Assembly: GCA_964035545.1 (NCBI GenBank)
Contig: OZ037766.1
Location: 14,374,722 to 14,438,721 of the forward strand
Direction: 5' to 3'
Length of the DNA stretch: 64,000 nt
Origin: Bugula neritina
Lineage: Eukaryota; Animalia; Bryozoa
The translations under genes and the position numbers were made by a program. Numbering within the stretch: the stretch's first letter is position 1; each line of letters begins with the position of its first letter. This document shows, one piece after another, positions 27,700 to 33,600 of the stretch. The notes below the pieces were generated by a model that saw nothing but the letters and a program-made list of their open reading frames with translations, had not been told where the DNA came from and did no database searches.

Positions 27700-30600
27700 C
27701 TATGGACAACCTGAAAAAGCTAAAGAAACATGTAAATTAGACAGATAAAAAACAATAATATACAAATTTAAACAAATGCATGTTCATGTACAAATAAATA
27801 GTTTAACAAAATTCAAACATTCACGGCAAAAATAATCATGCTTTCAGACTGAAACTAAATTTACAGGCTGTTGATTAAATTATATTTCAGAAATATCACA
27901 GTGAGTCTAACAATTCTTGGCACTTGAAATATATAAATTAATTTAATTTGGCAAATAATAACGTAATAAGCATGTCTTGTTTTCACTTAAATGTTTATTT
28001 TTCAAATATCAACACTCTACCCTTAACATCTTGCCACTGTTTAAGCAGCTCTTCCTGTTGCTTTAGCTGAAGTTCATATCGACCACAAACTATGTTCAAC
28101 TCGTCAATTGTACGGTTCCTTTCCTTTATAATTTGCTCTTTCTTTTCTAAATGAGCCTTTAGGTTTTTACAGCTTTCACATGATGCAGAAGGATTCTATA
28201 AAATGGTAGAATTACAAATATAACATGTAGACATAGAAAGTTTAAGTTAGTATAATTTCATTCATTTCAAGAAAATTAAGAAAAGCTGAAAAGTAGAAAA
28301 ACACATCGGCATTACCATCGTCAATTAGATTAAAGAAAGTTTCACATCTATTGGAGGCTCTTAATAATTAGATGTAGGTTACAAGCAAATGTAGTTTAGC
28401 GCTACTCAACTTCTGCAATTTCACAATGAAACCAATTAATAATTTGGTGTACTTTTGGCCTAGTTGAACAGAGATGGCTTACTAGAACTTAGTACAGTCC
28501 CTCCTCCATGAAAACAAACTATAAACTATTTAGACTTACAAGTAACCATCAACATTCTAAACTCTATAGTAATTATTCTTAATTAGTTATATCCGTGTAG
28601 TGTATAAAATAGTACTGCAATGCACACAGAAATAACCAACATCTGGTGGAACAAGTGACAAGTAATTGGAACTTAAAAAAATCTAGCAGAAGGCAAATTC
28701 AACCTAATGTCAAAAGATCACTCTTGCCCAGCACTAACTAATGCAAATATATTCATCATAACTTAATTCATTCATAGTTAAACACTGCGTTGTTTCCTAC
28801 AAATGTTAGGAAGTTCCAATAACTCATCTTCCAATGATGAAAATTTAAATGTGATTGGTTTGATACACTAAAACACTTCCTACAATAATAAATATGTAGT
28901 TTGCATTATACTCAACTATCTTCTAAATCTAACCCATTATGAAAGCAGCATTACACTACATTACATATTACATACTAGCATGGGTAACAAACTCTCTCAT
29001 TACTGCTATAAAAAGATCTCAATGTGTAACTATAGCCCTTTAGCACATGTGGACTACATCTTAAAATAATTATAGCCTACTGAGCAGCAATAGGCTACTT
29101 ACCTTTCTTTCACATTAAAACTATAACATAGAACCAGGAAACTTTGTCTAAACTATAAGCATATGGGTTTTTGTTTACACTCATAATTCATCAAATGCAT
29201 CTCAAAAGATTTCAAACTAGGAACTAACTTTAGATCCAGATTGGCGAAGTTTCTGTCTTAAATTCTCACATTCTCCTTGTACTTTTGTTAACTCTTTACT
29301 CAATTCATCAATTTGTTGTTGTCTTTCCCTGGAAACATTTAAATAATAAAATTGTGTAGTCTGAAGGTCTGTTAACATCATGACAATACATTACCATTTC
29401 ATTTCATAGTTGCAGTAACACAATTGGTAAAGGTTGTCACAAAACTGTTGGTAGCAGTGTGACGAGTTCGAAAAGTCTGGTAGTCAGAAGTGTAGAGACA
29501 AGTAGCATACAGCTTGCTAATCCAGTTGTGAGTAAATAGAGTTGTGAATATAAGCAGACTTTATTTCTCTAGTAAGATTTGCACAGATGGATTTATAAAA
29601 ATGAACTGCGAGAATGAACTTATAAAAAGGAGCTGACTCGTAAACACAACTGCCTCAGTATTTATAGTAAACAACATACTCTAGAACATTCCCAAGCATT
29701 CCAGTATATAGAAGATTCTAGTAGAAAACATTCTCCACATGCCAATACTATTTATAACAAACCAAAACCAAAAATACCATTCTTTGATGAGAAGGTGGAT
29801 GAAATGGATAGCTATTTAGAGCGGTTCGAGTGGGTTGCCGAAGGATGTAACTGGGACAAGGGAGATTGGCCCTACCATCTCAGTCAGTACCTAAGGGGTA
29901 CAGCAACAGAAGCTTACATCCGGTTGTCACCTACTGATCGTAGAGATTATAAAAAAGTCAAAGAAGCCTTATTGGAGCGCTTTAACTTGACTCAAGAGGG
30001 CTACAGAAAAAAGCTCAGAGAGGCAGAAGCTTACGAGGATGAAACTCCTGCCCAACTGTTCACTAGGATAGAAAGTTATGTGCACAAGTGGGTGGAGCTT
30101 TCAGGGGGCATGGACATAGCCAAACTAGTGGCGACTGAACAATTTATATCATCATGCCCAGACGACCTAGCTGTGCATTTAAAGCAAAGTTCCTACAACA
30201 GCAGTGAAGATATGTGTGATGCAGCATCACTGTTTTTGCACGCCCGTGGAAGGAAACTAGCAAAGACAAAGAAAAATAATACAAAAAGGATGGAAAACAC
30301 ACCCACCGGTAGCATGAATGCTGAACAAGGAAGTAAAAGCGATGGGGCATGCTTTATTTGCAAAGATAAGTCACACATTGCTCGTAACTGCCCACGGCGG
30401 GGGAAGAAGTACTGTTCACATTGCAAGATGAACAATCACAATACTTCAGACTGCAGAAAGTATGGTGGAAGGTCGGTGCATGCTGCTGCTGCAATAGCGA
30501 CTACTCAGAATAAGACTGTGGTCACAGATCCAGGAATCTCATTTAAAGTGGAAGAACCTACGGAAATCACAGTTAATGGTAAAAAGTTTGTCAACGCTGC

Positions 30601-33600
30601 TGTCTGCAAGAATGGACCTAAATTCAAAGATGGGGGCACAGCAATATTTGATGCGGAAGTTAATGGCCAACGAGCTACTGTAATGCGCGACACCGGCTGT
30701 GGTTGCATTGTAGTCAATGCAAAGTATGTGCAACCTCAACACTTAACTGGAGAATCAATTTATCTGAAAATGGCTGATGCAAGTGTTAGGGAGGCTCAGT
30801 GGGCACTTATCTCAGTGCGCTCACCATTTTACAATGGTGTCGTCAAAGCTGCAGTAATGGACAAGACGATTTGTGACCTGCTTATTGGGAATGTGGATGG
30901 AGCGAGATCAGCTGACCAACCGCTGGAAAACTGGAAGGACTGCGCCGTAACCACAAGAGCTCAAGCTGTCAAGGAAAAGTCAGGAGACAAACCACTGATG
31001 GTTGATTCAAATGCTAACCCATTAAGTATAGGGAAAGATGAGATAGCCAGAATGCAGAGGGATGACCCCACATTGGAGCGTTTCTTCGATGCAAAAGAAG
31101 TGAAGGAGAAAAAGGGATGCACCACTAGGTTTGTGGTGAGAAATAAGATTCTGTACCGTGAGTACACCGACTCGAAGTCTGCCAGTGTAAAACCTGTTAA
31201 ACAGCTCATGGTACCCAGTTCACTGAGGAAGGAAGTTCTACAGAAAGCTCATGACTGCATAATGAGCGGACACCTAGGAGTAAAGAAAACCACTGATAGA
31301 GTGCTTTCCAACTTCTTCTGGCCAGGACTAAACGGAGATGTCGTACGTTTCTGTCAATCATGTGACATTTGCCAGAAGACGGTGAAAAAAGGCTCAGTCA
31401 TGAAAGTTCCAGTACAGGAAACTCCACTAATTGACACCCCATTCAAGAGATGTGCAATAGACCTAGTCGGACCAATTAACCCTCCAAGTGAGAAAGGACA
31501 CCGCTACATTCTAACTTTAGTTGACTATGCTACAAGATATCCTGAAGCTACACCATTGAAGAACATTGACTCAGCTACTGTAGCTGAAGCGCTGCTTGAC
31601 ATGTACAGTCGTGTTGGGATACCAGAGGAGGTGATAAGCGACCAAGGAACTCAATTCATCTCGGACTACATGAAAGAGTTTACCAGATTACTTGACATGC
31701 GACAACTTCCTACCTCACCATACCATGCAATGGCCAATGGACTTGTGGAAAAGTTCAACGGAACCCTCAAGAGTATGTTAAAAAAGTTGTGTGCAAAGAG
31801 CCAAGACAGTGGCATCGATTCATCAATGCGGCTCTATTTGCATATAGAGAAGTCCCACAGGAATCAACAGGCTTCGCCCCATTCGAGTTACTCTATGGAA
31901 GAACTGTGCGTGGACCAATGTACATCCTGCGACAACTTTGGACAAAAGAAGACACTGCCGATGAAGTCAAGACCTGCTATCAACATGTTTTTGAATTGAG
32001 AGAGTGTTTAGATGACATGATGGAAATGGCACTAGCTTCGCTAAAAGACAGTCAAAAAAGATACAAACACTATTTTGATAAGAAAGCTAAGCAGAGAGAC
32101 TTCAAACCTGGTGACAAAGTGCTCATTCTTCTACCTACAAATGGAAATAAATTGTTGATGCATTGGCAAGGACCATTCAATATTGAGGAGAAAGTCAGAC
32201 TGAATGACTACATTATCAACATTAGAGGCAAGAGGAGAACATACCATGCCAACATGCTGAAGAAATATTTTGAGCGGGAGACGCCTACCGACCCTAAAAC
32301 TGTTGGAGCTGTGATGACTTTAGATGCTGCTGGTACTGGAATTATTGATCACGATAAGGAAAAAGAAGAATGCCAAGATGATGTGTTGGACCTGTACAGT
32401 AAGAAACAGCAGAGTGATGAGATAGGCTATGTATTTACAGAACTTCAGAATCAAGGTGGAGTCAATCAAAGGAAAGGACAATGTTGGAACCGATTATCTA
32501 AGCCGAATTGACTCAGAATTTTAAGTAGTTAGGAGAAATGATCAAGATAATTTCTCTTAGAATGGGGGGTTGTCACAAATTCTGAGTGTACATATACCTA
32601 TAAATAGACTTACCGGGTTTTTCCTAATGATAATACACGAATGTTCACAAATATTCTAGACTGATCAAAGAGATGGGTCATTGTTCATTGTTACTGTTTT
32701 AGTTAGTCATGTTAACTACTGCCCAGCAATGTAAACAAGGTGTTGCGCAATAATTGCGAAATAACCATGGAAATTCCAATGTTTTGTTTTGTTTTGATTT
32801 TCTATAAATAGTATTGGCATGTGGAGAATGTTTTCTACTAGAATCTTCTATATACTGGAATGCTTGGGAATGTTCTAGAGTATGTTGTTTACTATAAATA
32901 CTGAGGCAGTTGTGTTTACGAGTCAGTTCCTTTTTATAAGTTCATTCTCGCAGTTCATTTTTATAAATTCATCTGCGCATATCTTACTAGAGAAATAAAG
33001 TCTGCTTATATTCACAACTCTATTTACTCACAACTGGATTAGCAAGCTGTATGCTACTTGTCTCTACACTTCTGACTACCAGACTTTTCGAACTTGTCAC
33101 ACTGCTACCAACAGTTTTGTGACAAAGGTATTTCAGAGAAAGAAGAGAACACATTTTCTTAATCATCTGATGGGATAAGATAGAATGTGAAATACTATTA
33201 AACAGGAGGAGATTTAAAATTATTATAATGTAATTCTATATTGAAATTGAAAGAAACAAAATCGCACACAAATTCTGGTGAAGTGGTATGAACCTCCACA
33301 GTATGAAGAGGGTTAGAAGATTTACCCAATCACAGAAAGGAATCAGCATCGTTTCTCCAATAGGAGCTCAACAAAAGTATCACTATCAAATCAGAACTTG
33401 ATCATGAAAAGATGGCCAGCATCAGGCGTTGACCCAACCTCAAGTCATTATGTGTTAATGTGTTTATGCTTCAATTACAACTACTTTAATTTAATAAATA
33501 AAGCTGTCAGAATCATAGACCAAAACACAGTATTATATTGGGTTAGTTTCCATTGTTCTCAACTGAAAATGGATAGCAAAGATCAATAATATTTCTAACC

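Follow-up and report, generated by a model that had tools for sequence, protein, structure and literature searches.

Background

Gypsy elements of the Gmr1 clade are recognized by an integrase that lies upstream of the reverse transcriptase (RT) (PMC8220671), and SCAN domains have been reported to derive from the Gag of Gmr1-like elements (PMC3424704). For Ginger1, a DNA transposon, Bao and colleagues suggested that the terminal inverted repeats (TIRs) perhaps arose from two long terminal repeats (LTRs) that incidentally flanked an integrase in opposite orientations (PMC2836005). According to the same authors, Ginger elements are marked by a 4-bp target site duplication (TSD), by a CCGG/CCGT target (Ginger1) or an AT-rich RTATAY target (metazoan Ginger2), and by TIRs of about 40–270 bp (PMC2836005). 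An element of comparable appearance is present in a stretch of 64,000 bp from the bryozoan Bugula neritina (C2:14374722-14438721), which is referred to below as the window. In this element, a Gypsy-type integrase lies between two inverted LTR ends flanked on both sides by the same 5 bp, and an earlier note on this DNA had raised the possibility of an LTR retrotransposon in transition to a DNA transposon.

LTR retrotransposons also give rise to non-autonomous deletion derivatives that are mobilised in trans, including gag-retaining types in plants. Complex insertions of LTR retrotransposons are known as well and have been attributed to template switching or recombination before integration (PMC1950507; bioRxiv 10.1101/452573). 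The analysis described here places the window element among ordinary retrotransposons: it is a single rearranged copy of a very active LTR retrotransposon family. Its loss of RT is unconnected with its inverted ends, and movement as DNA plays no part here.

A Single Rearranged Copy of an Active Family

A repeat search of the window placed two inverted arms at 29434-29781 and 32778-33125 (348 nt, 97% identity). Pairwise alignment narrows the LTR-derived left arm to 29435-29756, which matches the terminal 322 bp of the right LTR (32803-33124) in reverse complement with exactly five mismatches; the earlier note had counted about five. It consists of part of U3, followed by the R and U5 parts of the LTR. 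The inner 25 bp of the 348-nt arms lie beyond this LTR-derived sequence and are homeologous only (18/25). The AAGGT flanks and the 9-bp terminal inverted repeat of the LTR (TGTCACAAA/TTTGTGACA), both described earlier, were read again at the ends of the element and of the LTR, respectively; the chance of a 5-bp flank match is 1/1024. Comparison with normal copies of the family confirmed that the 5' LTR, the primer binding site (PBS) and the start of gag (about 135 first codons), all present in those copies, are missing. Instead of an architecture with two direct LTRs, only the 3' LTR, the polypurine tract (PPT) and the TSD are found.

The description of gag, protease and integrase core as open was partly upheld. 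The DDE core does lie in a frame of 734 amino acids (aa), but the C-terminal part of the integrase is in another frame. The break is near 31795, where the element shows a one-base length difference from all of the 28 copies compared (28/28; a private gap at alignment column 2040). Because the 5' LTR promoter, the PBS and the gag start are missing and the integrase is frame-broken, the element is dead and could not retrotranspose again. No sign was seen that it ever moved as DNA.

The inverted end was tested for uniqueness throughout the assembly of 216 Mb in 321 contigs. With a 141-bp probe that spans the left junction, the only full match was at its own place, and the other scored matches began at the base homologous to 29755. 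A census was based on the 20-mer of the U5 end, all 129 exact occurrences of which were included, with neighbours paired and 38 sites with one or two mismatches left out. It yielded 35 same-strand pairs 3.7–4.0 kb apart, which are RT-less copies, 12 same-strand pairs 5.0–5.2 kb apart, which are RT-bearing copies, one further pair 4.6 kb apart, and 34 unpaired ends. Only one opposite-strand pair was found within 15 kb. This is the window element, the sole outward-facing U5 pair among the 129 exact ends. The 500-bp flanks on both sides are single copy in the assembly, and a search with both of them revealed no empty-site or footprint paralogue there. Searches for proteins identical to the 734-aa or the 731-aa frame, both of them copy-specific, gave no match.

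The family moving by a DNA route that the earlier note had envisaged is not borne out. Further copies of the left junction, which were to reveal such movement, were searched for in the genome, and only its own locus was found, so that junction 29754/29755 occurs once. The relatives have direct LTRs and the inverted copy stands alone, an outcome that the note itself had named as refuting a mobile system.

Across window positions 29755-33124, the relatives are 96–98% identical to the element, and the genome contains at least 35 RT-less and at least 12 RT-bearing copies. LTR and internal parts were mapped on 30 loci, and 24 RT-less copies were studied end to end. All other mapped copies have two direct LTRs, and the point homologous to 29755 lies about 450–530 bp from the 5' LTR; this interval holds the PBS, the leader and the first ~135 codons of gag. 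Direct LTRs (pair identity 99.6–100%) and a perfect 5-bp TSD were found in 24/24 RT-less copies. In normal copies, a PBS-like TGGGGGCTGCTCCGGG (TGG...) follows the 5' LTR at a distance of two bases, and their PPT does not differ from the one in the window.

The family comes in two size classes. The short class (4.3–4.5 kb) has one frame of 1053 aa with Integrase_H2C2 and rve, and RT is absent; the long class (about 5.7 kb) has one frame of 1489 aa that encodes gag, protease, integrase, RT and RNase H. The Pfam order in the RT-bearing copy L028 is Integrase_H2C2 (aa 617-673), rve (693-788), RVT_1 (1113-1271) and RT_RNaseH (1361-1464), of which RVT_1 and RT_RNaseH are absent in the RT-less copy L002. 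With the integrase domain encoded ahead of RT, the domain order suggests a Gmr1-like Ty3/Gypsy LTR retrotransposon. Matches of the family gag to SCAN reached 24.2–25.3 bits, all under the 27-bit Pfam cut-off. The closest named relatives of the RT-RNase H part (56–67% identical) come from marine invertebrates including Watersipora, Saccoglossus, Oculina, Ciona, Littorina and Penaeus.

The short class differs from the long one by an in-frame deletion of 1299 bp bounded by a 9-bp direct repeat, AACAGCAGA. The deletion lies downstream of the integrase, because in a Gmr1-like family the integrase comes before RT. No RVT_1 and no RNase H were found by Pfam in the open frames of the window element, which agrees with the earlier note, but this loss is not peculiar to it: at least 26 of the copies sampled share the deletion. 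In 26/26 sampled RT-less copies the open frame spans 906 aa or more, and in 25/26 it spans 1024 aa or more. The subfamily lacks RT, its numerous young copies have kept their LTRs, PBS, PPT and TSDs intact, and it exists beside an RT-bearing partner with the same ends. The loss of RT characterises a trans-mobilised subfamily; it is no move toward DNA transposition.

Several further observations were made on the family. The RT-less and RT-bearing classes, with 35 versus 12 pairs, are represented for example by L002:1097-4255 in L002-L027 and by L028:1109-5575 in L028-L030. Variable sites at codon positions 1, 2 and 3 number 75, 63 and 217 in the 25 RT-less copies of the alignment. Just three alignment columns divide the RT-less from the RT-bearing copies, which suggests frequent recombination between the two classes. 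The LTRs of L002-L025 are 81–96% identical across copies and 512–625 bp long, with indels around a 27-bp tandem repeat. The internal region (about 97.6% identical across copies) is far less variable than the LTRs, yet both LTRs of one copy are identical. A tandem array of 16,063 bp was found on the minus strand at C9:6246786-6262848 (L045, L046), in which the LTR-internal unit is repeated four times and closed by an LTR. All five of its 559-bp LTRs are identical, and one perfect 5-bp TSD, GATGG, surrounds the whole; it could be a multimeric complementary DNA (cDNA), the result of repeated unequal LTR-LTR exchange, or an over-expansion by the assembler.

Origin of the Inverted End

Every normal copy departs from the window copy directly upstream of 29755, and LTR and gag share TA at this breakpoint. 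Immediately to its right, gag agrees in 18 of 25 bases with the reverse complement of 32778-32802, the LTR sequence by which the arm would have been continued. Only 7 of the 1,475,381 placements of internal sequence against the inverted LTR match as well (top 5e-6). This homeology lies on the side that a leftward-growing strand has already copied. A strand that switched templates under the guidance of homology, onto the antisense strand of the LTR, would be expected to show the TA microhomology and the 18/25 homeology on this side, and such a switch is what the junction points to. Random end joining or a mis-join by the assembler would not be expected to land at such a site. Of the earlier proposals, a one-off aberrant cDNA and a rearrangement after insertion are both alive, now sharpened to a homology-guided template switch.

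The explanation favoured here, which we give an even chance, is that the element is a dead, aberrant copy of a young RT-less Gmr1-like subfamily, trans-mobilised by RT-bearing relatives, that was made by a switch during reverse transcription and inserted by integrase. In the particle, minus-strand synthesis on the RNA would have proceeded leftward into gag until it reached 29755. The last ~27 nt of the minus strand at this position resemble LTR 32778-32804, and the strand end may have annealed at this site to antisense LTR DNA. The template would have been the 5' part of minus-strand DNA, either its own or that of a co-packaged genome. Copying would then have run to the 5' end of the template, which is by construction the U5 terminus. 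The top strand could have been finished, for example, from a second minus-strand strong-stop DNA, and the product would be linear DNA that carries U5 at either end. The two termini of the element present the same 9 bp (TGTCACAAA/TTTGTGACA) to integrase, which would have inserted the U5/U5 DNA once and made the 5-bp AAGGT duplication.

Further findings fit this route. The arm stops exactly at the U5 terminus, and a run-off of the minus strand gives such an end for free. The family also contains another product of the kind expected from RT template switching, namely the deletion of RT and RNase H between the copies of a 9-bp direct repeat.

Several points weigh against it. The same structure can be obtained after insertion by two microhomology-guided switches, and completion of the top strand requires a second non-standard priming step. 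A second U5/U5 insertion was not found among the 129 exact U5 ends, and nothing thus indicates a recurrent process. Between the arms there are 5 differences in 322 positions, against 0.15 expected at the LTR-pair rate of the family (P = 5e-7; the rate is based on 6 differences in ~13 kb of other LTR pairs). This excess implies either an event that predates the sampled insertions or a slightly different template for the arm. Finally, one otherwise rare left-arm variant recurs in two solo LTRs, C4:12469014-12469172 and C4:14299267-14299429 (L043, L044).

The five arm differences were compared with a sample of 33 LTRs. Within this sample, three occur in the left arm only and one in the right arm only, and at the fifth the right arm has the rarer state; 2/5 lie at CpG sites. 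A foreign template for the left arm was considered, as one of three clustered variants occurs in the solo LTRs, but these are more distant from the arm than the right LTR is, and a different source was not shown. The private internal differences of the window copy (10 in 2660 bp, against 1–15 in copies with identical LTR pairs) are uninformative for its age, because they mostly reflect unsampled source lineages.

The strongest competitor, less probable but to be taken seriously, is a rearrangement after insertion. A normal, RT-less copy with direct LTRs would have been inserted at AAGGT and later have suffered a break or a stalled fork in gag, followed by fold-back repair synthesis. The 3' end of the bottom strand would have annealed at 32778-32804 in the 3' LTR and copied 322 bp to the LTR end. 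A second switch, back to the start of the 5' LTR, would have used the 9-bp terminal inverted repeat. As a result, ~1030 bp would have been replaced by an inverted 322-bp piece of LTR, and the original TSD kept. The inner junction provides the microhomology for this route (TA and the 18/25 homeology), and the outer one the 9-bp TGTCACAAA that is common to the LTR start and to the reverse complement of the LTR end. An unusual integrase substrate is unnecessary, and the arm divergence of 5/322, together with the broken frame, suits an older, damaged locus. However, two switches are needed, the second of which must fall exactly at the last 9 bp of the element, and more than 3 kb of single-stranded DNA or a distant switch is required. 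Most such repairs would leave untidy ends and no clean, TSD-flanked element. A comparable scar was seen in none of the ~50 other paired elements.

Reverse transcription is preferred over repair because the U5 end comes for free, because reverse transcription is prone to switching, and because the family shows a deletion of the switch type. This preference is one that we infer; the sequence itself does not decide.

An artefact of the assembly, in which a mis-join or a chimeric read made the inverted left arm, is very improbable. No independent contig with the open reading frame (ORF) of the window copy is on record, which would be compatible with an artefact. However, the arms differ at five positions and are not a fold-back copy of one molecule. 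The junction shares only 2 bp of identity, so there is no repeat on which an assembler could mis-join, and a matching 5-bp TSD is not expected from a mis-join. The flanks are unique and continuous.

The reading as a Ginger-like DNA element, with the LTR arms as TIRs and the unit moved by integrase through cut-and-paste, is close to refuted already and hardly credible. It draws on the resemblance to the proposed origin of Ginger1 from opposite LTRs around an integrase (PMC2836005) and on the TGT...ACA ends with a clean TSD. Against this stand a single copy in 216 Mb (by exact U5 ends and junction probe), a frame-broken integrase, and single-copy flanks with no empty or footprint paralogue in the assembly. 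The internal sequence is 97–98% identical to that of ordinary retrotransposing copies and forms no separate lineage. The TSD has 5 bp as in the retrotransposon family, versus 4 bp in metazoan Ginger (PMC2836005).

Two independent insertions, with a second member or solo LTR inserted upstream in opposite orientation and both trimmed by deletions, are just as implausible. In favour of this reading, the family is very active and solo LTRs exist (34 unpaired U5 ends; two solo LTRs inspected). However, the outer 5-bp flanks would have to match by chance (1/1024), the deletion end points would have to hit one of the best homeology sites, and both LTRs would have to be nearest relatives despite the 4–19% by which family LTRs differ between copies. 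The arms are indeed each other's closest kin (98.4%; identity to the next LTR is 95.7% for the right arm and 94.7% for the left one), which together with the matching TSD speaks for a single origin of both.

Features of the Element and Its Surroundings

The features of the element are collected in Table 1. The 734-aa frame carries a SCAN-like capsid, CCHC knuckles and a DTG protease. Pfam placed Integrase_H2C2 at aa 473-529 and rve at aa 549-644 of this frame; its SCAN match (25.3 bits) is under the 27-bit cut-off. Pfam detected no tyrosine recombinase in the element, in which rve and Integrase_H2C2 are present instead, and a DIRS-like element was rejected on this ground.

Table 1. Features of the inverted-end element, in window positions.
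Feature	Position	Strand	Basis
Left TSD, AAGGT	29430-29434	.	Identical to 33125-33129, read directly
Inverted left arm with U5-type TGTCACAAAA outer terminus	29435-29756	-	Pairwise alignment with 32803-33124 (reverse complement, 322 bp)
Breakpoint: TA microhomology (29755-29756), then 25 bp of gag homeologous to LTR	29755-29781	+	Comparison with normal copies
Internal region: 5'-truncated gag, protease, integrase, short tail	29755-32570	+	96.5–98% identity to other copies
734-aa open frame: gag remnant, protease, integrase zinc finger and DDE core	29795-31999	+	ORF and Pfam
240-aa second frame, C-terminal part of integrase	31789-32511	+	ORF; weak SH3_Tf2-1 match (Pfam)
RT-RNase H deletion junction, 9-bp AACAGCAGA	32405-32413	+	Direct repeat in RT-bearing copies
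PPT, gaatgggggg	32560-32569	+	Identical in normal copy L002
Complete 3' LTR, 554 bp, TGTCACAAA...TTTGTGACA, 9-bp terminal inverted repeat	32571-33124	+	Read directly
Right TSD, AAGGT	33125-33129	.	Read directly

Open frames for coiled-coil protein lie on the minus strand at 23386-29381 and 36668-37057, with weak, sub-threshold matches to the TPH domain. The host site is probably an intron of a gene for a coiled-coil protein, with the element in antisense orientation. Downstream of the element, long dinucleotide microsatellites of the (TA)n-like and (CA/TG)n kinds are found at 36025-36228 and 39850-40203.

Significance

The window element offers a cleanly resolved case of a product of template switching in an LTR retroelement, with its TSD intact. 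It also illustrates the way in which an integrase gene can end up between inverted LTR ends, the structure hypothesised for a Ginger precursor. The element may, at a little under an even chance, have entered the chromosome as linear U5/U5 DNA, and would then be a natural record of a Gypsy-type integrase concertedly inserting an integrase-carrying DNA bounded by inverted repeats. If so, this entry would be the first step postulated for the birth of Ginger1 from LTR retrotransposons; the window copy went no further. As a weaker addition, transcription through the host intron would yield RNA in which the 322-bp arms pair into a double strand directed against the family LTR, a potential seed of silencing. 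The tempting but mistaken view of an LTR retrotransposon on the way to a DNA transposon is removed, and a curiosity of faulty copying remains.

The RT-less subfamily is of interest in its own right. It is very young, its gag, protease and integrase are open, its copies exceed those of the RT-bearing partner roughly threefold, and almost all of its polymorphism is shared with that partner. It therefore invites study of the functions that are required in cis.

Comparison with Known Systems

The likeness to Ginger1 and Ginger2 (GIN) lies in inverted termini that start with TGT, in the Gypsy-type integrase between them and in the lack of RT in the unit. With opposite LTRs around an integrase, the element also resembles the hypothetical precursor of Ginger1 (PMC2836005). 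Unlike Ginger, it is a single copy with a frame-broken integrase, and there is no evidence of excision or of movement as DNA. The 5-bp TSD AAGGT shows neither the CCGG/CCGT nor the RTATAY preference, and the arms measure 322 bp. Its integrase shares one frame with gag and protease, in DNA that is 97–98% identical to copies with direct LTRs. The same integrase is carried by RT-bearing relatives and is not a separate transposase lineage. Elements of the DIRS/Ngaro type, which have inverted terminal repeats, differ in another way: the domains found here by Pfam are those of a DDE integrase (rve, Integrase_H2C2), not a tyrosine recombinase.

The family agrees with the Gmr1-like clade in its RT-bearing frame, which runs from gag through protease, integrase and RT to RNase H, and in TG...CA LTRs with PBS, PPT and 5-bp TSDs. 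The sub-threshold, SCAN-like match of gag would be in line with the derivation of SCAN from Gmr1-like Gag (PMC3424704). The window copy departs from the clade in lacking the 5' LTR, the PBS and RT, and in a left end formed by an inverted piece of LTR.

Like trans-mobilised, non-autonomous derivatives of LTR retrotransposons, the RT-less subfamily keeps the LTRs, PBS, PPT and packaging-side sequence and has lost RT and RNase H. It is commoner than its RT-bearing partner, and its insertions are young, with identical LTRs. It differs from such derivatives in a long open gag-protease-integrase frame kept in 26/26 sampled copies, in a deletion that is in frame, and in variation concentrated at third codon positions.

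The complex insertions described previously (PMC1950507; bioRxiv 10.1101/452573) have the direct order LTR-internal-LTR-internal-LTR, and inverted forms are not mentioned in the text of the latter report. In the window element, by contrast, the extra piece of LTR is inverted and replaces the 5' end. The two nevertheless share an abnormal order of LTR and internal sequence within one intact TSD, an arrangement that has been blamed not on chromosomal recombination but on errors of reverse transcription.

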